Origin: Paramoeba atlantica | Lineage: Eukaryota > Protista > Discosea | Assembly: GCA_977017575.1 (NCBI GenBank) | Contig: CDRNVI010000121.1 | Coordinates: forward strand, 1-13,222 | Direction: 5' to 3' | DNA length: 13,222 nt | In this document: one piece after another, positions 1-13,222 of the stretch | How the letters are laid out: each line of letters starts with the position of its first letter | Numbering within the stretch: the first letter of the stretch is position 1 | Notes under the pieces: generated by a model | Databases searched by the model: none | Seen by the model: the letters and a program-made list of their open reading frames with translations, nothing else | What the model was told of the DNA's origin: nothing | Made by a program: the position numbers and the translations under genes

Positions 1-175
1 AATAACAGAACGCGGCGGCGCTTTTTGCCGAATTTGCATACCCCATCGTTTTTGGGTGGATAGCGAAAAACGCTTTGTGAAATTGTTGGTAAGTGCCAAA
101 GGTATGCGCTTAATTGATAAGCTTGGCATCGATACGGTGCTAACCAAGTTACGCGCCAAGGGTCAAAAGATATAG
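1..175 (+). CDS. rpmB: 50S ribosomal protein L28, 5'-partial, one +1 frameshift (extra C in CCCC at 41-44)
   Basis: Manual translation: [14 protein letters not shown] then, after removing one [47 protein letters not shown](173-175); typical proteobacterial L28. Not in the ORF track. Confidence 0.95.
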
Positions 176-190
176 GATTAAAGAACAAGT

Positions 191-374
191 ATGGCAAGTA
201 TCAAAGTTAAAATGGTTTCTACTGCTGAAATCACCAAAACGGTAAAACTCGTAAAACAGGTTACTACCGCACCGACAAAAGTCAATCCACGTGCAGAAAA
301 AAAGCTGGAAAAAATGATGTACGATCCTGGTCGTACGCAAGCGTGCTGTATTCAAGCAAGGAAAAATCAAGTAA
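191..374 (+). CDS. rpmG: 50S ribosomal protein L33 (zinc-free type), three apparent indels
   Basis: Reconstructed MASIKVKMVSTAEITKNGKTRKTGYYRT(D/T)KVNPRAEKKLEKMMYDPVVRKRAVFKQGKIK-TAA(372-374), needing -1 (~235-238), +1 (~272-280) and +1 (~329). Directly follows rpmB as in the rpmB-rpmG operon. Confidence 0.9.
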
Positions 375-400
375 CGCACCACAGCATCTCTCCTCCGAAT

Positions 401-446
401 CCGTCATCAACTAGGTGGGCGCAACATAGTTGATGACGGGCTTTAT
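401..446 (+). terminator. Probable intrinsic terminator of rpmB-rpmG
   Basis: Perfect 13-bp inverted repeat CCGTCATCAACTA (401-413) / TAGTTGATGACGG (427-439), 13-nt loop, followed by GCTTTAT; U-tract is short. Confidence 0.6.
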
Positions 447-510
447 CTCGCATGTTAATTTACAAGTAATCGATCTATTCTTTGCCCCCCTTTTATGAAT
501 ACCGTTATGG

Positions 511-516
511 GGAGGT
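511..516 (+). promoter_or_regulatory. Shine-Dalgarno site for mutM
   Basis: GGAGGT ending 4 nt before ATG 521, supporting 521 rather than the TTG at 482 as start. Confidence 0.75.
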
Positions 517-520
517 ATGT

Positions 521-1349
521 ATGCCTGAATTGCCTGAAGTGGAAATCACTCGTCGTGGTATTGCGCCATTGATCCGTGGCAAAACCATTACTGATGTCAT
601 TATCCGTCAATCACGATTGCGTTGGCCGATCCCGACCGATTTATCAGACCAACTCATTGGGGCCACTTGGCAAGCCGTTGAGCGTCGTGCCAAATATTTA
701 TTGCTCAGCACGCAACGTGGCACGCTGATTATTCATTTGGGGATGTCTGGTTGTTTAAGAGTACTTGGCGTAGACATTCCAGCAAAGAAACATGATCATG
801 TGGACATTGTGTTAAATAATGAAATGATCATGCGTTACCACGATCCAAGACGTTTTGGTACCTTATTATGGACCACTCAATCACCTGCGCAGCATCCATT
901 ATTACGTGATTTAGGTGTTGAACCGTTATCACGACAATTTACTGCAAAATATTTTATATACTATTGCAAAAGTACGGCAGAAGGCGACAAAATCATTCAT
1001 TATGGATAATCGAATAGTCGTTGGTGTTGGGAAACATTTATGCAACAGAGGCCTTATTTGCCAGTGGCTTACACCCAAATCGTCGCGCAGCAACATTGAG
1101 TTTGGCTGAATGTCACCAGCTGGTAATGAATATCAAAATCAATTTTGCGTGCGGCTATTCGTCAAGGCGGTACTACCTTAAAAGATTTTTGCGGTGCTGA
1201 TGGCAAAACCGGGTTATTTCTCACAGACACTGCAAGTCTATGGCCAACAAGGAAAGTTATGTCCATGTTGTGATGCAGTCATCCAAGCAATAACAATTGG
1301 TCAACGTACCAGTGCGTTTTGTCCAAGTTGCCAGCCTATAACAAAGTAG
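521..1349 (+). CDS. mutM: Formamidopyrimidine-DNA glycosylase (Fpg/MutM), four +1 homopolymer frameshifts
   Basis: MPELPEVE start, [39 protein letters not shown], zinc finger CPCC...FCPSCQ, TAG 1347-1349. Removing one base at ~951-954, ~1032-1034, ~1135-1138 and ~1205-1208 gives a continuous 274-aa protein. Confidence 0.95.
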
Positions 1350-1363
1350 TAATCTGTGTATTA

Positions 1364-1387
1364 CATTAACATATAGTTATGTTAGTG
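1364..1387. terminator. Hairpin between convergent mutM and ggt; possible bidirectional terminator
   Basis: CATTAACATA-TAGT-TATGTTAGTG, 10-bp stem with one G:T pair; AT-rich, so weak. Confidence 0.4.
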
Positions 1388-1391
1388 ATGT

Positions 1392-1727
1392 CTATTTCTT
1401 TGTTGGCAATGTTGCTACACTCGCTTTACCATAGCGTCTTGGATCGGCTGCGGCATATAATTGATTACGTTTACGATCCCATAAGATAGCTTGCATGTTG
1501 CCATACGGTGCAATCGGTTTTAAGTGATACCCCATTTTTTTCCAGTTTTGCTACGTGGTTGCTCCCCACATGCCTTGTTCATATTCAACAATGTCTGGTA
1601 AAAATTGTTGATGGAAACGTTTGCGTGCTACCCAATGTTTTGGTAAATGGCCATCGGCCATGTCTAAGATAGCTAGTAACACCATGCTAATAATACGACT
1701 ACCACCTGGTGTGCCTATGTTAAAAGG
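1392..1727 (-). CDS. ggt: Gamma-glutamyltransferase, C-terminal fragment only (cut at the junction)
   Basis: Minus strand: IGTPGGSRIISMVL...RFHQQFLPDIVEYE...(L)EKMGYHLKPIAPYGNMQAILWD...AAADPRRYG...KK-TAG. The GTPGGSRII, RFHxQxLPD and ADPR motifs match the GGT small subunit. An internal TAG at 1551-1553 is best explained by compensating indels. Confidence 0.88.
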
Positions 1728-1735
1728 TACCTTTT
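1722..1735. other. Bacterium/mitochondrion junction within a perfect 14-bp palindrome
   Basis: AAAAGGTACCTTTT is its own reverse complement. Left of it reads as ggt on -, and GTACCTTTTGCATAATGG to the right is conserved LSU rRNA sequence. Confidence 0.85.
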
Positions 1736-2209
1736 GCATAATGGGGTCAGTGGAGTTAATTATTGTAGCAAAATAAAAAAATTATTAAATTTTTTTAATT
1801 GTAATTAATATATTTATAGTTATAATAATTAGACCCGAAACCAAGTGATCTAGTCATGGGCAGATTGAAGTTAATTAAATATTAATGGAGGATCGAACCC
1901 GTTTATGTTGCAATATATTGGGATGACCTATGATTAGGGGTGAAAGGCTAATCAAACTTGGAGATAGCTGGTTTTCTACGAAATCTATTTAAGTAGAGAT
2001 GAAATTTAAATTTATATAAGGTAGAGCTACCATATTGGGTTGTTGAATCCATATGAACTTCAAATAAATATAAAGTAAAAATTTTAATTTCGATATATGG
2101 CGAAAAGGTTGTATATCAAGAGGGAAAGAGCCCAGATTATAAATTAAGGTTTCTAAATTAATATTAAGTTAAAAAGTATATTATAATATTAACAATGAAT
2201 AGGAGGTAG

Positions 2210-2243
<34 letters not shown>

Positions 2244-3988
2244 CAGCTCACTATTGATAGATATTTATATACAAAAATATAACGAAAATAAATATTATAC
2301 CGAAATTATAAAATATTATTTAAAATAATAATATTGGTAGTAGAACGTTTTATAAAAGAAAAAAAAAATTGTTAAATTATAAAATTAAAATTGAATATAC
2401 TGGCATAAGTAGCAAAAATAATGTTATAAACATTATCATCTAAAAATCTAAGGTTTCTAATGTCAAGATAAACTGCATTAGGTTAATCGGTCCCTAAAAT
2501 GAATATGATAGTAATAATTGAAGGGTAGTTAAAGAGTTATAAGGATAACATAATATTTTTAACGTTATTAGTAGATGACAGTTTATTTTTTAAATATTTT
2601 AGGATCAAATTTTAATAAATATAGTAAAACATTGTGTGATATATTCGAATATATTGATTGAAATATTTAAAAAATAAATTCAAGAAAGAATACTAATATA
2701 TAAAACCGTACTAAATCCTACACAGGAGGATTAGTAGAGAATACTAAGATGAATAATTGAATAATATCGAAGGAACTCGGCAAATTAACTCTGTAACTTC
2801 GGGAGAAAGAGTATTTTTATATATACATTATATGTATATAAAAATGTAACAGAATAGAGGATGGCGACTGTTTAACAAAAACACAGGACTTTGCAAAATT
2901 AATTAATGATGTATAAGGTCTGACACCTGCCCGGTGCTATAAAGGTAATTGTTATTGTTAATATATTATTTAATGTATTAGCTTTATATAGAATGAATAG
3001 TAAACGGCAGCTGTAAATATAACGGTTCGAAGGTAGCGAAATTCCTTGTCGAGTAAGTTTCGACCTTGCATGAATGGTGTAACGACTATCCTACTGTCTC
3101 CGGTATTATATTAGCGAAATTGAATTCTCTGTGCAGATGCAGCGTATTAATAGCTAGACGGAAAGACCCTATGCACCTTTACTGCAGTTATATTTTGTTA
3201 TTAAAAATTAAATTTATAGGATACAAACTAATCGTTTTAAAATTTTAATATTAGTTAATTGTTTAGATAATCTTGGAATAGTTTGAATTTAATTTTTAAA
3301 ACTTAATAATTTTTTATTGACAGAATATATTTGGTAGTTTCTCTGGGGCGGAGACCTCATAAAATGTAACTGAGGTGTACAAAGGTAATTAAAATTTTAT
3401 TAGAAAATTTTGGCGTGTAATGGCTAAAAATTACTTAACTGTGAGATTTACAAATCAAACAGAGATCTTTTTTATTAAAAAGGTCGGTCATAGTGATCCA
3501 ATATAATTGAATGGAAAATATATTGCTCAACGGATAAAAGGTACGCTAGGGATAACAGGCTTATGACTCCGGAGAGAAGATATCGACGGGGTTGTTTGGC
3601 ACCTCGATGTCGATTGGTCACATCCTGGTTAAGAAAAATGTTCCAAGGGTAAGGCTGTTCGCCTTTTAAAGTGGCACCTGAATTGGGTTCAGAACGTCGT
3701 GAGACAGTTCGGTTCCTATCTACTATTAATTAATTAAAATTGAAGGAATCTTATCTTAGTACGAAAGGACTGGAGAAGGAATATCACTGGTAAATCGGTT
3801 GTAATTATAATTGCATAGTCGAGTAGCTAAATATTAATAATATAATTATTGAATTCAATCAGATATAAGAAGATTATCCTAAAATATTTTAAAAGTATTG
3901 ATTGTAAAAGATTATTACGAAATTAAGTTATGTGTGTAAGTCCTGTGAAGGATTGAGCTAAATAATTTTAAGAATCAATCTAATTTAT
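1727..3988 (+). rRNA. rnl: Mitochondrial large subunit rRNA, 5'-truncated (begins near E. coli 23S position ~560); 3' end approximate
   Basis: Conserved blocks in order: GTACCTTTTGCATAATGG, GACCCGAAACCAAGTGATCTA, GGAACTCGGCAAA, GGTAGCGAAATTCCTTGTC, GACGGAAAGACCC, GGATAACAGGCT, CACCTCGATGTCG, GAGACAGTTCGGTTCCTATC, AGTACGAAAGGAC. AT-rich variable regions; no intron-sized gap seen. Confidence 0.95.
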
Positions 3989-4040
3989 AAAAAGAAAAAA
4001 GAAAAAAGAAAAAAAATTTCTATATAAGAAAAAATAAAAT

Positions 4041-4099
4041 ATATAATATTTTGAAAATATTATATGTAATAAAACAACAAACTTTAAATTAAAGTTTGT
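4041..4099. repeat. Two adjacent AT-rich inverted repeats in the rnl-trnN spacer
   Basis: ATATAATATTTT-G-AAAATATTATAT (4041-4065) and ACAAACTTTA-AAT-TAAAGTTTGT (4077-4099). Confidence 0.6.
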
Positions 4100-4113
4100 A
4101 ATTTGTAAAACAA

Positions 4114-4186
4114 TACTTGGTAGTTTCAATGGTAAAATAATTGGCTGTTAACCAATCAGATGTAGGTTCGAATCCTGCCCAGGTCG
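4114..4186 (+). tRNA. trnN: tRNA-Asn(GTT); 1:72 T-C mismatch
   Basis: Cloverleaf: acceptor TACTTGG/CCAGGTC, D stem GTTT/AAAT, anticodon arm ATTGG-CTGTTAA-CCAAT, T arm GTAGG-TTCGAAT-CCTGC. Confidence 0.95.
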
Positions 4187-4200
4187 TTGTATAAAAATAA

Positions 4201-4289
4201 GTTTATGTGGCTGAGTGGTTTAAAGTAATCCTCTTGAAAAGGATCGTATAATTTTAATTATACCGTGGGTTCGAATCCCACCATAATCT
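4201..4289 (+). tRNA. trnS: tRNA-Ser(TGA), long variable arm; 2:71 T-T mismatch
   Basis: Acceptor GTTTATG/CATAATC, anticodon arm ATCCT-CTTGAAA-AGGAT, variable arm GTATAATT/AATTATAC, T arm GTGGG-TTCGAAT-CCCAC. Confidence 0.95.
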
Positions 4290-4352
4290 TAATATAAAAA
4301 AAAAGGAAAAAATTTATGTAAATTATATAATATATAATATATTATATATAAA

Positions 4353-5885
4353 TACTTGTATGTTTTATTCTGGCTTTGAGTAAATGCTAGTAGTTCGCTT
4401 AACACATGCTAGTCAATTAAAATTTAAAATTTAAAATTAATGGCGTAAGGGTGAGTAATATATAAAAACGGGACTTATAATTATGTTTATATTATAAACT
4501 GGTTTATAAAGATTTAGGTAGTTGGAGGTGTAATAGACTAACAAGCCGATAATTCTTAGTTGATCTTAGAAGGAGGTACAACCACATTGGGAATGAGAAA
4601 AGGCCCAAGTTCCATTAGGAGGCAGCAGTGAGGAATATTGAACAATGAGCGAAAGCTTGATTCAGCGAAACTACCTGAATTATGACAATTTATTGAAAAA
4701 TTCTTGTTTAAGTGAGCATAATGAGGTTAAACTTAAGAATAAGCATCGACTAACTTCGTGCCAGCAGTCGCGGTGATACGGAGGATGCGGGTGTTACTCA
4801 GCATTACTGGGCGTAAAGCGTATGATAAGTGGTTTATTTTTTAATAATATAATTTTAAAGGCGTTATTAGTAATAATGAATAAATTATATATTAGTAAAC
4901 TAAGAGTATTATTCAGATATATAGTATTCATAGAGGAAAGGTGAAATTTTATGATACTATGGAGACTATCAGAAGGTGAAAGCTATATATTAGATTTATA
5001 CTGACACTAAAGTACGAAGGTATGGGTATCAAAGAGGATTAGAGACCCTTGTAGTCCATACAGACAACGATGGATGCTAACTGTAGGAAATATTTTTGTG
5101 GTTTAGCTAACGCGTAAGCATCCCGCCTGGGGAGTATGATCGCAAGATTTGAACTCAAAGAAAGTGGCTGAGATTTGGTACGAACGGTGGAACATGTGGT
5201 TTAATCTGATATAACGCATAAAATCTTACCAATTCTAGATTGAAAAAAATTATAATAAATATAGTAAACTTTATATAATTTTTTTAAGCAGGTGTCGCAT
5301 GGCTGTCGTCAGCTCGTGTAGTGATATGTATGGTTAGGTCCTGTAACGAGTGTAATCCTTACAATATAATAAAATATATGATATATTATTATATTATTAT
5401 ATGTTATATTATTATATGTTATATTATTATATTTTATTATATTGTATTATTAATTATATATTAAATGAAATAGAGGAGGACGTCAAGTAGGTATGGCCCT
5501 GATGAATTGGGCTACACACGTGTTACAAAAATAATTACAAAAAAAAAATAAATTGTGAAATTTATTTAAATTATAAAGATTATTATAGTTCGGATTATTT
5601 TTTGAAAATAAAAATATGAAGTTGAAATCGTCAGTAATCGAAAATTAGAATGTTTCGGTGAAATGGGATCCAAATCTAGTACACACTGCCCGTCACGCCA
5701 AGAAAGTTGTTAATATTGGAAAAATTATAATTAATAATTTATATTTATTAATTATTTTTAATCTATTGGAGATAATTAATTTTTAATAAAATATTATTAA
5801 TTATTTAATTTGAATGTATTGATAGTAATCAGGGTGAAGTCGTAACATGGTAGTGGTAGGGGAACCTGCCGCTGGATGGAAAATA
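4353..5885 (+). rRNA. rns: Mitochondrial small subunit rRNA (ends approximate); no anti-Shine-Dalgarno tail
   Basis: TAACACATGC, GGAGGCAGCAG, GTGCCAGCAGTCGCGG, ATTAGAGACCC, GCATGGCTGTCGTCAGCTCGTG, GTACACACTGCCCGTCA, GAAGTCGTAACATGGTA in expected order and spacing; ends GCTGGATGGAAAAT without CCTCC. Confidence 0.96.
5391..5435 (+). repeat. 15-bp tandem repeat inside an rns variable region
   Basis: ATATTATTATATGTT x2 (5391-5420) plus ATATTATTATATTTT (5421-5435), within a wider TAT-rich tract. Confidence 0.6.
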
Positions 5886-5990
5886 AATTTATATTTTTTT
5901 AAAGGTAAGCTTATCGAACCCCTTTAAAATATTATATATTAAATTATATTCTCGTAAAAATTTTTTATAAGAGTGTATAATTTATATTAA
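5883..5990 (+). ncRNA. Candidate highly divergent mitochondrial 5S rRNA
   Basis: 9-bp stem TTTTAAAGG/CCTTTAAAA around a 15-nt loop containing TCGAAC (5S loop C-like), then a second hairpin CTC-GTAAAA/TTTTAT-AA-GAG; about 105 nt directly after rns. Helix I/II assignment is ambiguous. Confidence 0.4.
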
Positions 5991-6006
5991 TACAAATCAT
6001 ATTTTA

Positions 6007-6095
6007 GGTGAGTTGACCGAGTGGTTGAAGGTGTCGATCTGCTAAATCGATATATTATTCATATAATATCATGGGTTCGAATCCCATACTTACCT
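6007..6095 (+). tRNA. trnS: tRNA-Ser(GCT), long variable arm, fully paired acceptor stem
   Basis: Acceptor GGTGAGT/ACTTACC, anticodon arm TCGAT-CTGCTAA-ATCGA, T arm ATGGG-TTCGAAT-CCCAT. Confidence 0.96.
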
Positions 6096-6128
6096 TATAA
6101 AAAAATAATTTGTAATTAAAAAAAGTTT

Positions 6129-6201
6129 TTGGGGGTAGCTCAGTAGGTAGAGCGAAAGCCTGAAAAGCTTTAGGTCATTGGTTCAAACCCAATTCTCCAC
6201 A
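6129..6201 (+). tRNA. trnF: tRNA-Phe(GAA); 1:72 T-C mismatch
   Basis: Acceptor TTGGGGG/TCTCCAC, D stem GCTC/GAGC, anticodon arm AAAGC-CTGAAAA-GCTTT, T arm ATTGG-TTCAAAC-CCAAT. Confidence 0.95.
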
Positions 6202-6318
6202 TAAAACTTATATTAAATTTAATTATATATGGAATCATTAAAAAGAAAAAGAAAGAAAATTAAAAAAATAGAAAAAGTTTAAAAAAATAGAAAAATTAAG
6301 GAAAGAAATAATACAAAT

Positions 6319-6900
6319 ATGTTTGAAAAAAAAGAAAGTTTAATAAAAAATAGAAAAATTAAATTAATAAAAATTAATAGATTTAAATTACCTTCAGTTA
6401 CTTGATTATATAAAAAAAGGTTTAATATAAAATTAAAAAGCAAGTATATATATGCAGCAAAATTATCTTTTTTTAAAAAAAGATATTTATTTATTAATAT
6501 ACTAAAAAATTTTTTAAAGGGTTCAAAATTAGATTGGTTATCTTTGAAATTTTGTACTATTAATTTAATATTAAAATTTAGAAAAAATACTTATTTAAAT
6601 TTTTCGCATATTAATGGTAATGTAATAAAAAATTTTTCATGTGGTTTTTATTATAAAAAATCATTAAAAAAAACATATTTTGCTTTAAATTCATTAATTG
6701 TAGCTTCAAAAATTGATTTTAAATATTTATATATGAAAAAATGATTCATATTAAATATAATTTATAAATATTATACTCGTAAAATTTTGAGAAATTTAAA
6801 AGAATTATTTGAGACTACACCTTATAATTTAAAATTTATTAATTTTATAAAATCAAAAGCTCATAATGGTATAAGAAAGAAAAAGAGAAGAAGAAAATAA
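6319..6900 (+). CDS. rps11: Mitochondrial ribosomal protein S11, divergent, N-terminally extended (193 aa, code 4)
   Basis: Open from ATG 6319 to TAA 6898-6900 with TGA=Trp. C-terminus KAHNGIRKKKRRRK matches the S11 HNGxRxxKxRR motif; NTYLNFSHINGNVIKNFSCG matches the NTxxxxTDxxGNxxxxxSxG region. Confidence 0.8.
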
Positions 6901-6903
6901 TAA

Positions 6904-7227
6904 ATGAAAAAGAAAAAAATTATAAATTATTTAGATAATTCTTTTTTAAGTTTATTATCTATAGAATATAAAAAAAAATTAAATAATAATATATCTATTG
7001 AATTAAAGTATTTTTATTGATTATATAAGAATGTATATATACGTAATATTAAAGGATTAATTATAAATTTTAATAAAAAACAATATTTAAATATGGAAAG
7101 TTTTTTATTATATTATAGGTATAAAAATATACGATTAAATCAATTATATTTTGTTACTTCACCTTTTAATCTATTTTTAAAATATAAAATTAGTAATATT
7201 AAAAAATATAAATTATATATATTATAA
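6904..7227 (+). CDS. orf107, unidentified K/N/I/Y-rich protein (very weak S10 resemblance)
   Basis: ATG 6904 to TAA 7225-7227, open only with TGA=Trp (7018-7020); fills the rps11-nad9 gap with 3- and 12-nt spacers. Not in the ORF track. Confidence 0.65.
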
Positions 7228-7239
7228 ATAAAAAAAAAT

Positions 7240-7830
7240 ATGTTATTAAAAAAAAATAGTAATAATTATGCTGTAAATTATATATTAAATTTACTAATTA
7301 AATATATTTCGCATATAAAAATAACAGATGAATTTATTAAAATTAAATTAGTATCAAAAGATTATTTAGGTTTTGTTTTAAATATTTTTAATAAGCATAC
7401 TTTTTTAAGATATAAGGTAATAACTGATATTTGCTGTAGTGATTTTATTGATAGAGCTAAACGTTTTGAAATTGATTATAATTTATTAAGTATAGATTAT
7501 AATTCTAGATTAATTATTTCTGTATCTTGTGATAAATTAGATGTTATAAGATCTATTACTGATATTTATTTAGGTGCCGATTGGTTAGAACGTGAAGTTT
7601 GAGATATGTATGGTATTTTTTTCATGGGTCATAAAGATTTAAGACGTATATTAACCGATTATGGTTTTGAAGGTTATCCGTTTCGTAAAGATTTTCCTTT
7701 AAATGGTTATTTAGAAATAAGGTATGATGAAGATAAACAATATTTGATTTATGAGCCTATTGAATTAATGCAAAATATGAGATCATATAGTTTTACTAAT
7801 CCTTTATTAAATAAAAAATATATACTTTAA
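7240..7830 (+). CDS. nad9: NADH dehydrogenase subunit 9 (196 aa, code 4)
   Basis: Track ORFs 7240-7602 and 7606-7830 join in frame through TGA=Trp: [40 protein letters not shown]. Confidence 0.98.
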
Positions 7831-7834
7831 AAAC

Positions 7835-9019
7835 GTGAATAAAATATTTAAAAAAATAAAAACTTTTACAATTAATTTTGGACCACAGCATCCAGCAGCT
7901 CATGGAGTTTTAAGATTAATATTAGAATTAAATGGTGAAATTATAGAAAGAGCTGATCCTCATATAGGATTATTACATAGAGGTACTGAAAAATTAATAG
8001 AATATAAGACTTTTATACAAGCTTTACCTTATTTTGATAGATTAGATTATGTATCTATGATGGCTCAAGAACATTGTTATTCATTAGCTGTAGAAACTTT
8101 AAGTTCTACTAATGTACCTATAAGAGCAAAGATGATACGTATGATTTTTGGTGAAATAACTAAAATATTAAATCATATTTTAGGGTTAACTACACATGCG
8201 TTAGATGTTGGAGCGATGACACCTTTTTTATGACTTTTTGAAGAACGTGAAAAATTAATGGAATTTTACGAAAGGGTATCAGGTGCTAGAATGCATGCAG
8301 CATATATAAGACCAGGAGGTATTAGTCAAGATATACCTATGTCTTTTTGTGATGATTTATATAAATTTACACAAAATTTTATTAACTCTTTAATGGAAAT
8401 GGAAGAATTATTAAATAGAAATAGAATATGAAAGCAACGTTTAGTTGATGTAGGTATATTAGATTATAATCAAGCACAAACTTGAGGTTGTAGTGGAGTT
8501 ATTTTAAGAGGATCTGGTATTCCTTGAGATATTAGAAAAAGTGAACCTTATGAATTATATAATGAAGTTGATTTTAAATCTTATATAGGAAATAAAGGTG
8601 ATTGTTTTGATAGATTTTTAATTAGATTAAAAGAAATGCATGAGAGTTTAAAAATAATTTTACAACTTTTAAATAATTTAAAAGAAGGTCCTATTTCAAA
8701 TTACAATAATAAATTAACTATACCTTCAAGATCATTAATGAAGTTTTCTATGGAATCTTTAATACATCATTTTAAATTATTTACAGAAGGTGTTAATATA
8801 CCTTTTAATGATGTTTATAGATCTATAGAAGCTCCTAAAGGGGAATTTGGTGTTTTTTTAGTTTCGGGAGGATTAAATAGACCGGTAAGATGTAAGATAA
8901 AAGCACCAGGGTTTAATCATTTACAATTATTAGATACATTATCAAAAGGACATATGATAGCCGACGTTGTTACTATTATAGGTACTTTAGATATAGTTTT
9001 TGGGGAGGTTGATCGTTAA
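7835..9019 (+). CDS. nad7: NADH dehydrogenase subunit 7 (394 aa, GTG start, code 4)
   Basis: [83 protein letters not shown]; four in-frame TGA, at least three at conserved Trp sites. Confidence 0.98.
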
Positions 9020-9052
9020 TCAAATATTAATATAATATTAAATATTATATAT

Positions 9053-9508
9053 ATGCAAAAAAAATTAAATCGATTTTTTAATTTAAGAATTAATTCTAGA
9101 GGTGCCGCTTTTGAAAATTTAAATATAGGACCTAATTTAAGTCCTTATATGAATAGAGAGAAAATCAAAGAATTTTGTAATGAATTTAATAAACAAACTT
9201 TTATATATAGATCGGAAGATTTATTAATATATGTTAGATTATTTTTATATACTGATAAATCATTTGTTTTTTTAATAAAAGGACCTTCTTTTAGTACTTT
9301 ATTAAAATTGGTTTGAAATATTATGAGTTTAACTAATAAAAATATTATGGAAAATTCAATTACATTAAGAAGTCTATATGATATTGTTATATTGCGTAAT
9401 TATTATTGATTTAAATTATATAATAATTTAAATCAAAATTGAATAAAATTGCGATTTAAAAATAGTTTTTTTTCTATATCAAATTTACAAATTAATAAAA
9501 TTATATAA
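9053..9508 (+). CDS. rpl11: Mitochondrial ribosomal protein L11 (151 aa, code 4)
   Basis: IGPNLSP, IKEFCNEFNKQT and KSFVFLIKGPSFSTLLK match L11 motifs; reads through three TGA to TAA 9506-9508. Confidence 0.9.
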
Positions 9509-9514
9509 AAAAAT

Positions 9515-9895
9515 ATGAATAATAATATTATAGCTTTTTTTTATGTAAATCAATATAAATCGTTTAATAATTTTGAACAAATTTATTTAAACATAATGAA
9601 TTTATCTAATATTAATTTATTATATAAAATTTTTGTTAATATTAAATATTTTCTAATTATTAATAAGAAATATTTTAAAGATTATTTTACTAATCTTTTA
9701 AATAATGATGAATTATTATTTTTATGATATAAAAATAAATTATATAGTAAAGGAACTTTAGAACAAATAAATAATAGTTTGTTATTAAATTTAAATAAAA
9801 AGTATTATTTATTTAATGAATTAATGAAATTCAATTATGAAAAAAAAATTATTAATACGTTAATAATATTTAAATATAAATTATGGCTTCGTTAA
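9515..9895 (+). CDS. orf126; candidate divergent ribosomal protein L10 by synteny only
   Basis: ATG 9515 to TAA 9893-9895 reading TGA 9725 as Trp; sits between rpl11 and rps12 and overlaps the rps12 start by 13 nt. No motif recognised by eye. Confidence 0.6.
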
Positions 9896-10293
9896 ATCAA
9901 TTAATAAGAAATAAAGGCAGAGTAAAAAAAAAAAGACGTACAAAAGTTCTTTTGTTAGATTCTTGTCCACAAAAAAGAGGTGTTTGTATTGAAATTAGAA
10001 ATAGTGTTAGTCCAAAGAAACCAAATTCCGCTAAAAGAAAAGTAGCAAAAATAAGGTTATCAACAGGTAAAAAATTAATAGCAGTTATACCAGGTCAAGG
10101 TCATAATTTACAAAAATATTCAGTTGTTATGATTAGAGGAGGACGTGCTAGAGATATTCCAGGTGTACGTTATAAATTGATAAAAGGAAAATATGATTTT
10201 AGTAATTGAGAACGTGAAGAACGAAATAAAAGTCGTTCTAAATATGGTTTGAAAAAAAAAAAGAAGGAAGGAAAGATTTTAAAAGATGAATAA
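9883..10293 (+). CDS. rps12: Mitochondrial ribosomal protein S12 (136 aa, code 4)
   Basis: [50 protein letters not shown], then through TGA to RSKYG; TAA 10291-10293. Confidence 0.97.
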
Positions 10294-10705
10294 TTGAATA
10301 AAATATTTAATACAATTATTAATAAGAAAAGGAAAAAAACAACGAATTATATTAAGTTTAGAGAAAATTTTTATTAATATAAAAAAAATATATGGTTGTT
10401 TAAATACTTTTTTTAAACAAATAGAAACTAATATATTCATTAGAATGTTTTGTTATATTAAAAAAGTAGGAGGTAAAAAATTATTAATACCACATATTTT
10501 AAAATCAAAAGATTCTATACCATATTCTGTTAAATTAATAGTTAGATCTATTAATTCTAGAACTGAGCGAAAATTTCAAGAACGTATTCAAAATGAATTA
10601 ATAGATGTATATAATAATAAAGGTTTATCTATAAAAAAAAAAAATGATATGTATAGATTAATAGAAGCAAATTATACTAATATTAGATTTAAAAGAAAAA
10701 AATAA
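10286..10705 (+). CDS. rps7: Mitochondrial ribosomal protein S7 (139 aa, code 4)
   Basis: ATG 10286 in frame with track ORF 10445; LLIRKGKK, KKVGGKKLLIP, IQNELID, SIKKKNDMYRLIEAN; follows rps12 with an 8-nt overlap. Confidence 0.88.
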
Positions 10706-10708
10706 TAT

Positions 10709-11452
10709 ATGTTAAAAAGGAAAAAACAGTCAAAAACAATAAAATATTTAACATTTGGTTTAAAAAATTATGCAGGAGTTAATAATATGGGTCATAAAAC
10801 AGTTAAATCAAAGGGAACTAGAGTTAAAAAGAAATATAGATTAATTGATTTTTTTAGAACTTACGTTGATATACCTGCAATGGTATTAAGAATTGAGTAT
10901 GATCCTAATAGATCTGCAAATATAGCTTTAATATGTTATAAAAATGGATTTTTATCTTATATTTTAGCAGCCGAAGGTTTGAAAGAAGGTATGGTTTTAA
11001 ATTCAGTAGATAAAATTGTTGGTTCTACATATCCTTTAGTAAATATAAAATTTGGTTCTTTTATATCTTGTATGGAATTAAAAAAAAAAAAAGGAAGTAA
11101 AGTAGCTAGATCTGCAGGTTCTTTTTGTTTATTAATATCACAAATAAATGAAAATTATTATTTAATAAGATTTCCTTCTGGTTTAGAAAAATTAATTTTT
11201 AAATATAATAAAGCTATGATAGGTATTGTATCAAATAGAGGGCATAATTTAATAAAAAAAGGTAAAGCGGGTGTTAATATAAGATTAGGTAAAAAATCAA
11301 CAGTTAGAGGTGTAGCAAAAAATTGTGTAGATCACCCTAATGGTGGTGGTAGAGGTAAAACTTCTCCATGAGTCGATTGTCCAAATTTTACAAGACGTGT
11401 ATTAAAATTTGTACCTACAACTAAGAAAAAAAAAAAAAATGAATTTAAATAA
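10709..11452 (+). CDS. rpl2: Mitochondrial ribosomal protein L2 (247 aa, code 4)
   Basis: RIEYDPNRSANIAL, ARSAGS, VRGVAKNCVDHPNGGGRGKT; continues through TGA 11369 to TAA 11450-11452. Confidence 0.97.
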
Positions 11453-11717
11453 TATTAAAAATATTAAAAATATTATTTATTTTTTAAATTTTTCAAAAAT
11501 AGATAAATTTATTTGATTAAAGTTAAAAGTAAAAGGTTTTAAAATAAAAAATTATATGATTAATAAAAGATTAACTGTATATAATGGTCGTTATTTTATT
11601 CCAATTAAAATTATAGATAGTATGGTTAATTATATGATTAATTATTTTTTTTTTTCAAAAAATATATTAATAAAAGATAAAAAGAAAAAGAAACGTATAA
11701 AGAAAAAGAAAAAATAA
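11439..11717 (+). CDS. rps19: Mitochondrial ribosomal protein S19 (92 aa, code 4)
   Basis: TVYNGRYFIPIKIIDSMVNYMINYFFFSK resembles the S19 VHNGKxFxPVxIxxxMVGHKLGEF motif; between rpl2 and rps3; 14-nt overlap with rpl2. Not in the ORF track. Confidence 0.85.
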
Positions 11718-11719
11718 TT

Positions 11720-12910
11720 ATGGGACATTTAGTTAATCCAATAACATATAGATTATCAAAAAGTAAATATTGAATTTCGTCTTGAAATAATATTACAAAA
11801 AAAAATTATAAATTATTTTTTTTAGAAGATTATAATATTATTAAATTTTATAATTGAATTAAAGTTATAATTAATTGAAACAAGTTAAATTTAGAAATAT
11901 TACCGTTAAATATAATTAAAACATATAAAATGATGATAATAAATTTAAATTTATTAAATGATGATAATAAATTTTTAATTAATGATATTAAGTCAAAAAA
12001 ATATAAATTAAAAAAATATTATAATCAGTCAAAAAAATATATATTTAAATCTTTTTTAAAGTATAAACAGTCAAAAAGAAAAAAAAAATATAATTTTTTA
12101 AAAGAAAAAAAAAAAAAAAAATATATATTAAATTTTTTACGTAAATTTTTTTATAGTAAAAGAAAAAATTTTTATAAAAATAAAAAATATGTTTGATTTA
12201 ATTATTTTTTTTGAGACATGCATAATAATAAATATTATTTATTTTATAATAAGTCTTGTAGAGGGTTTTATAGAAAGAAAATATTTAAAAATATATGAAA
12301 AAAAAAATCAATAAATAATTTTAATAATTTTAAATATTTTTATAAATATAAAAATATTTATATTTATAAAAATAATAAAAGATTAAACAATTTTATTTTT
12401 AAATATAAATGATTTAATTTATTAAGAATTCCAACTAATCGTTGATTAAATAGATTAAAATATATTAAAAATACTAATTATTTAACTTTAGATAAAAAAT
12501 TTATTTTTATATTAAAAAATTTTTTATCGTTTTTTATAAAAAAAATTTTTAAAGTTAATAATCCTATAATTAATTTTATAGATAAAAAAGAAGTAAATTA
12601 TTCTACTTATTCTTTATATAAGCTAATTTTATGAAGATTGCGTGTAGGTTATAAAATAGAGCATTATGCTTATTTATTACATAATAAATTAAAAAATGAA
12701 AGAGGTATTATAGGTTTTAAAATAGGTTATGCAGGGAGATATAAAAAAAAGTTAAGAAATAAAAAGTTTATTAAACAATTTGGTGCTATTTCACCAAGTA
12801 ATATAAATTCTCCTTTAAGTTATAATCAGTTTATTTTAATTATGCGGTATGGTGTTTGTGGTGTAAAAATGAGTTATGTTAGAAAAGTGTATTTATCTTC
12901 TATAATATAA
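11720..12910 (+). CDS. rps3: Mitochondrial ribosomal protein S3 (396 aa, code 4), long low-complexity middle
   Basis: MGHLVNPITYRL...W.S.W N-terminus and IIGFKIGYAGR...YGVCGVKM C-terminal domain; single open frame with TGA=Trp, joining track ORFs 11930 and 12638. Confidence 0.92.
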
Positions 12911-12958
12911 AAAGAAAGAAAAGAGAAAAAAAGTTGATTTATTAAGAAATAAATAGAA

Positions 12959-13222
12959 ATGAAAAAAATTTTTGTCAAAAAACATTTAATATTAAATTAT
13001 TCTAATACTAAAAATTCGATAGAAAAAATATATAATGGTCAATTTGCTATATATTTTTTAGAAGGTGGTATACTATATAATAATGAATTTAAGGCTTTAT
13101 TATTTTTTTTAAAAAAAAGATTAAAATTTTTTACTAAATTATTTATACGTTTTCATCCAAGTTTTAAAAATACATCAAAACCTATAGGTGTTAGAATGGG
13201 TAAAGGTAAGGGTGCATTAAAT
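12959..13222 (+). CDS. rpl16: Mitochondrial ribosomal protein L16, 3'-partial
   Basis: GQFAIYFLEGG and RFHP...TSKPIGVRMGKGKG (L16 signature); follows rps3. Not in the ORF track. Confidence 0.95.
   Translation, partial: MKKIFVKKHLILNYSNTKNSIEKIYNGQFAIYFLEGGILYNNEFKALLFFLKKRLKFFTKLFIRFHPSFKNTSKPIGVRMGKGKGALN

Follow-up and report, generated by a model that had tools for sequence, protein, structure and literature searches.

The window analysed here comprises the complete contig C121 (13,222 bases), one of the 248 contigs of a 45.7-Mb assembly of Paramoeba atlantica. It combines two domains of origin, gammaproteobacterial DNA at positions 1-1717 and mitochondrial DNA at positions 1716-13222. 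The join between them is present in the contig, and we consider it, with a probability of about 0.94, to be a chimera produced by sequencing or assembly that does not record a gene transfer. We hold with equal confidence that the contig stems from one chimeric long read, or very few, that paired DNA of a co-cultured gammaproteobacterium with DNA of the protist mitochondrion and was kept as a contig. A preliminary description of this DNA had favored a chimeric read or a misassembly at a contig end, a preference that is now supported by the intact state of both partners elsewhere, the lack of a bridging contig, the distribution of errors and the recurrence of similar joins. Nothing supports the alternative that it had entertained, a genuine insertion of bacterial DNA into the mitochondrion, and such an insertion cannot be the main form of either genome.

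Two genomes in one contig

The two parts of the contig differ in composition, with a GC content of 0.37-0.47 over positions 1-1800 and 0.10-0.39 further to the right, so that the sharp fall in GC reported at the boundary is real. The artificial join, a feature without strand, lies at 1716..1717, where the dinucleotide TA is common to both partners and constitutes their sole overlap (2 nt). In alignment, the identity of the mitochondrial part with other contigs of the assembly reaches back to 1716, and the match of the bacterial part to contigs from public sequencing runs reaches 1717. There are no inserted letters and no adapter between the partners at this point, and a search for direct or inverted repeats flanking it, including target-site duplications and terminal repeats, found none. 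The left part of the contig contains only rpmB, rpmG, mutM and ggt, with no integrase or transposase among them; these results agree with the initial report that no target-site duplication, integrase or transposase accompanies the join. The contig starts within bacterial DNA and shows neither a second junction nor a nuclear flank.

The bacterial part opens in the middle of rpmB (ribosomal protein L28), the 3' portion of which occupies 1..175 on the plus strand, with a match to Pfam Ribosomal_L28 on 56-175. An extra base at 41, opposite which contigs of three runs show a one-base gap, shifts the frame of this gene. The encoded L28 is 64-79% identical to gammaproteobacterial loci, the maximum of 79% being reached with enterobacterial loci. 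The next gene, at 191..374 on the plus strand, is read from its ORF as an apparently frameshifted rpmG (L33), a name that we assume from the translation as read and the usual rpmB-rpmG neighborhood; contigs of four runs show one-base gaps opposite its extra bases at 272 and 329. The third gene is mutM (formamidopyrimidine-DNA glycosylase; 521..1349, plus strand), in which the Pfam domains Fapy_DNA_glyco (N-terminal), H2TH and zf-FPG are matched in different frames. It is broken by four +1 frame changes, and the gaps at 952, 1135 and 1205 fall at such changes. The N-terminal 146 amino acids of MutM are 63% identical to a locus in an Aeromonadaceae MAG, the best among the matches listed (tblastn, at least 80 loci), and the next matches listed, from Coxiellaceae and others, reach 55-57%. 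The MPELPEVE pattern at the MutM N-terminus is, to our knowledge, universal.

The fourth gene, ggt (gamma-glutamyltranspeptidase), is represented by its last ~110 codons at 1392..1717 on the minus strand, where positions 417-467 of 512 of Pfam G_glu_transpept match at 1551-1712. A Legionella locus aligns with this portion over its GGT residues 476-600, and mutM and ggt are likewise adjacent in one Legionella and one Pseudomonas locus. As judged from these sequence comparisons, the source of 1-1717 is a gammaproteobacterium with a GC content of about 0.42. No other copy of bacterial 1-1720 was found elsewhere in the assembly. Because the listed extra bases are private to C121 and coincide with the frame changes, rpmB, rpmG and mutM are intact in the actual bacterium and disrupted in C121 alone. 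A reading of the three frameshifted genes as pseudogenes was rejected, since the run contigs of bacterial origin lack the listed extra bases.

The mitochondrial part begins inside rnl (LSU rRNA; 1716..3992, plus strand), the Rfam LSU match ending at 3992. The intact gene is found in contig C120, where it corresponds to L003:966-3746. The breakpoint corresponds to L003:1474 within a gene that starts at L003:966, and hence 508 nt are absent from the rnl of C121. Positions 1718..1796 on the plus strand, adjoining the join, form an uncorrected mitochondrial stretch with one-base insertions at 1746, 1752, 1781 and 1790. Downstream of rnl, trnN(gtt), trnS(tga), rns (SSU rRNA, 4352-5887), trnS(gct) and trnF(gaa) were located within 4114..6202 on the plus strand with ARAGORN and Rfam. 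Within 7228..13222, a region that is 99.8-99.98% identical to 10 other contigs, Pfam matches on TGA-bounded pieces and code-4 ORFs reveal nad9, nad7, rpl11, an unnamed ORF, rps12, rps7 and rpl2, followed by a short ORF (putatively rps19, from its position), rps3 and an ORF that runs off the contig end, all on the plus strand.

Genetic code 4 applies to this part: all 12 plus-strand ORFs that close inside the contig stop at TAA, and together they contain 26 in-frame TGA codons against three TGG. In nad9, a TGA interrupts the Complex1_30kDa match between profile positions 86 and 89. We take the mitochondrial gene order and the use of TGA for tryptophan to fit an amoebozoan.

Several details of the two truncated partners had been read from the letters beforehand, and most of them hold. 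The cut in ggt had been placed directly upstream of its GTPGGSRII motif; the codons for GTPGG lie at 1701-1715 on the minus strand, and the gene is indeed severed 1-2 nt (about one codon) ahead of the motif. That rnl starts mid-molecule is likewise correct; its missing portion, however, had been put at about 560 nt and amounts to the 508 nt given above. Direct reading confirms TAG as the stop codon of rpmB, mutM and ggt, and shows that rpmG, for which no stop had been mentioned, ends in TAA. The claim that the right-hand genes end in TAA and use TGA as tryptophan is substantiated by the code-4 ORFs and the split domain of nad9.

Some features of the mitochondrial part deserve mention in their own right. 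The regions 6283-7227 and 9509-9895 contain three very AT-rich code-4 ORFs of 205, 107 and 128 codons, which may be divergent mitochondrial genes. At position 8163, in nad7, C121 has A where all other mitochondrial copies compared there have G; this A is either an uncorrected error or a low-frequency variant.

Separate continuation of the two partners

At the two loose ends, 1716 and 1717, each partner continues with sequence of its own. The mitochondrial part of C121 is repeated, at ~100% identity, on more than 20 small contigs of the assembly. At least 14 contigs (C120, C112, C125, C118, C126, C115, C119, C113, C124, C108, C133, C132, C131 and C116) match C121 from 1744 on, in each case in mid-sequence. 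Eight of these 14 were aligned and proved collinear with C121 from 1716; upstream of that position they diverge from it into tRNAs and the 508 nt of the rnl 5' end. Thus, the assembly holds one copy with the join versus at least eight that are shown to run through the rnl site.

The redundant mitochondrial set consists of C95, C108, C112-C116, C118-C121, C124-C129, C131-C133, C135, C210 and C221. These contigs are read-sized (13-34 kb) and 99.7-100% identical, and the assembly is without one finished organelle genome.

Public sequencing runs, four runs from two studies, were compared with C121 1-3440 in the form of assembled Logan contigs. Among sampled words of 1-3440, 68-83% were present in X12-X15, which share one organism label and one study, and 49% in X16, which belongs to another label and another study. 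A bacterial contig of 12,662 b from X13, with a word depth of 65, matches C121 throughout 1-1717 apart from 12 one-base gaps (0 substitutions) and goes on for at least 255 letters past 1717, with ATACAGCCACTTTATC. Translated by hand on the minus strand, these letters place ...DKVAVL before GTPGGSRII, which amounts to an uninterrupted ggt. The mitochondrial counterpart, a contig of 15,777 b with a word depth of 437, covers 1716-3440 with 0 substitutions and four gaps and goes on upstream with ACTAAATAGCACTTTAAGCATAAATAATTA, the exact rnl letters of L003. Hence, the search for the intact 5' part of rnl and the intact ggt that the preliminary description had proposed yields both, as contigs of the assembly or the runs.

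The same pair of loose ends at the join was present in X12 and X14. In X16, both partners are represented by low-depth pieces, none of which crosses 1716/1717. Among the assembled contigs of the four runs, which drop rare variants, none with 31 letters on each side of 1716/1717 was listed.

Error pattern and probable origin

The errors along C121 are distributed with extreme unevenness. All 16 of its private indels are one-base insertions, and all 16 fall within 1-1796; the remaining 11,426 bases contain 0 private indels and one private substitution, at 8163. Under an even spread of errors, all 16 would fall within 1-1796 with a probability of about (1796/13222)^16, or roughly 1e-14. Compared with the bacterial contigs of the runs, the tail carries 12 extra bases and 0 substitutions, the positions listed including 41, 272, 329, 417, 485, 952, 1135 and 1205. 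The four insertions on the mitochondrial side of the join are private to C121 with respect to all eight mitochondrial copies compared and to contigs of three runs. A nearly perfect mitochondrial body together with an unpolished tail that extends ~80 bases past the join suggests a single chimeric read after consensus polishing. The predominance of insertions among the residual errors presumably reflects PacBio continuous long reads.

These observations point to a simple course of events. A fragment of the bacterial chromosome and a mitochondrial fragment were most likely joined end to end while the library was made or the reads were processed. The assembler would then have retained the chimeric read as a small contig of its own amid the redundant mitochondrial contigs. 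The abundant mitochondrial reads would have polished the mitochondrial part, leaving one-base insertions in the bacterial tail and in the ~80 bases next to the join. We infer that, physically, two fragments were ligated to each other in a ligation-based library for long reads, and that the tail of C121 derives from a single read. In the runs, word depth ranges from 65 to 11,000 for the bacterium and from 437 to 25,000 for the mitochondrion; because both are very deep, they are among the likeliest partners for random chimeras.

The join might also have arisen in the assembly graph, by a wrongful merger of bacterial and mitochondrial reads via shared sequence, with no single read containing the join. 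Such an error would suit the position of the join at a contig end and an assembly rich in redundant small contigs. The partners, however, share only the 2-nt TA and no flanking repeat, so that an overlap-based assembler would have had no basis for joining them, and the unpolished zone 1-1796 crosses the join unbroken, as one underlying read predicts. We therefore regard a graph misassembly as improbable.

Both PacBio and ligation-based ONT libraries are known to yield chimeric reads; one study measured 0.02% with a rapid kit versus 3.17% with a ligation kit, and such reads have been described as a pitfall in claiming DNA integration (PMC8495745). As in those ligation libraries, C121 joins unrelated, non-homologous templates end to end, its partners are those present in greatest abundance, each join is unique and unsupported by other data, and the result is a false signal of lateral integration (PMC8495745). 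C121 differs in that the chimera was carried through to a deposited assembly, where it stands as a separate contig, and in that the platform and the number of reads are judged indirectly. In common with bacterial contamination of eukaryote assemblies, pieces of a co-cultured bacterium occur in the assembly of a protist (the C121 tail, dnaA on C221 and rpoB on C89, the latter two described below); unlike a typical contaminant, the piece in C121 is fused to organelle sequence and does not form a separate contig. The fusion is probably the reason that screening missed it. Genuine integrations into organelle or nuclear genomes, such as NUMT-like insertions and lateral transfers, resemble C121 in switching composition and genetic code abruptly along a single sequence, but they have two junctions, belong to the main form of the genome and appear in independent reads, none of which holds for C121.

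Recurrent joins and the associated bacterium

A check for chimeric ends covered parts of C118, C113, C210, C116, C120, C221 and C95. Bacterial tails with a GC content of ~0.40 occur on at least three further redundant mitochondrial contigs, C118, C221 and C95, with the join at a different site in each. In C118, the tail at 1-6327 (GC ~0.40) encodes arsS, a heptosyltransferase and a cut purD, after which the sequence is mitochondrial. In C221, mitochondrial sequence extends to 8228, the equivalent of window position 11526, and the tail from 8229 onward contains a dnaA lacking the first ~30-36 profile positions; this is the sole dnaA in the assembly, and twelve other contigs, C121 among them, pass uninterrupted through the site of the join. 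The tail of C95 runs from 21779 onward (21779-26960), with the join at 21778/21779, and contains pieces of an IS1380 transposase at a GC content of 0.41-0.45. The tails of C118 and C221 have long intact ORFs, so the level of error is below that of the C121 tail, a difference that weighs against the chimeric-read account. All three are probably chimeras of the same kind as C121. Recurrent joins at differing sites are explained if the two templates of greatest abundance pair at random, but not by a site-specific or selected biological event.

Recurrence of mitochondrial-bacterial joins is also what would be expected if C121 copied a real but rare molecule, that is, minority mtDNA copies in heteroplasmy, or a recent nuclear insert, in which bacterial DNA is joined to rnl. 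Bacterial DNA might, for example, have been ligated into broken mtDNA in a few cells or mitochondria after uptake of an intracellular bacterium, and the reappearance of the bacterium with the protist in runs of two studies (X12-X14 and X16) indicates the sustained contact that this would involve. The many differing joins would then reflect ongoing, messy DNA capture rather than a library artefact. However, the sites of the recurring joins vary in the bacterial and the mitochondrial genome alike, in the manner of random chimeras; none of the contigs listed for the four runs bridges the join of C121, and each partner continues intact at high depth. Furthermore, the bacterial part shows 0 substitutions relative to the free bacterial contigs, with no decay and no compositional drift toward the mitochondrial part, and there is no second junction, nuclear flank, duplication or recombinase; rnl, moreover, would be destroyed. 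We judge such a molecule, including ligation into broken mtDNA, to be very unlikely, more so than a graph misassembly. A nuclear insert combining a NUMT with bacterial DNA was rejected, the 11.5-kb mitochondrial part being ~99.99% identical to the organelle copies and without nuclear flank.

The very probable origin of C121 in a chimeric long read leaves the join with no biological interest beyond assembly hygiene. It does carry a warning: screens of this assembly for lateral gene transfer or organelle rearrangement would yield false positives. C121 merits trimming at 1716 or dropping, and C118, C221 and C95 merit similar scrutiny.

Other contigs show further irregularities. C113 departs abruptly from the common mitochondrial sequence at 28573/28574, equivalent to window position 9538, where 11 other contigs run through, and its continuation after 28574 has a GC content of 0.24-0.34; this break may mark a chimera of two mitochondrial fragments or a join to other DNA. 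Positions 1-10000 of C210 have mostly a GC content of ~0.39-0.40 and short, interrupted ORFs, among which is a piece of an IS481/IS3-like transposase, and 817 b at its end (12587-13403) are identical to window positions 8459-9275, from nad7 into rpl11. C210 is likely another chimera. C89 contains, at 6985-11019, a complete rpoB (1884 bits) of the same or another bacterium in an open frame of 1363 amino acids, so free bacterial contigs remain in the assembly too.

The biological point to retain is the gammaproteobacterium that accompanies the protist across two studies. Stable carriage of a Vibrio with a GC content of 44.08% has been described for a Paramoeba atlantica culture (PMC12173713, 2025). 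The bacterial sequence, identical with 0 substitutions, occurs beside protist mtDNA in runs X12-X14 of study P6 and X16 of study P7, and because this agreement extends over two separate studies, the bacterium looks like a stable associate: a persistent companion of the culture, as food or symbiont, and not a one-off contaminant. Across the runs, the ratio of its depth to that of the mitochondrion varies from about 0.15 to 2.9.
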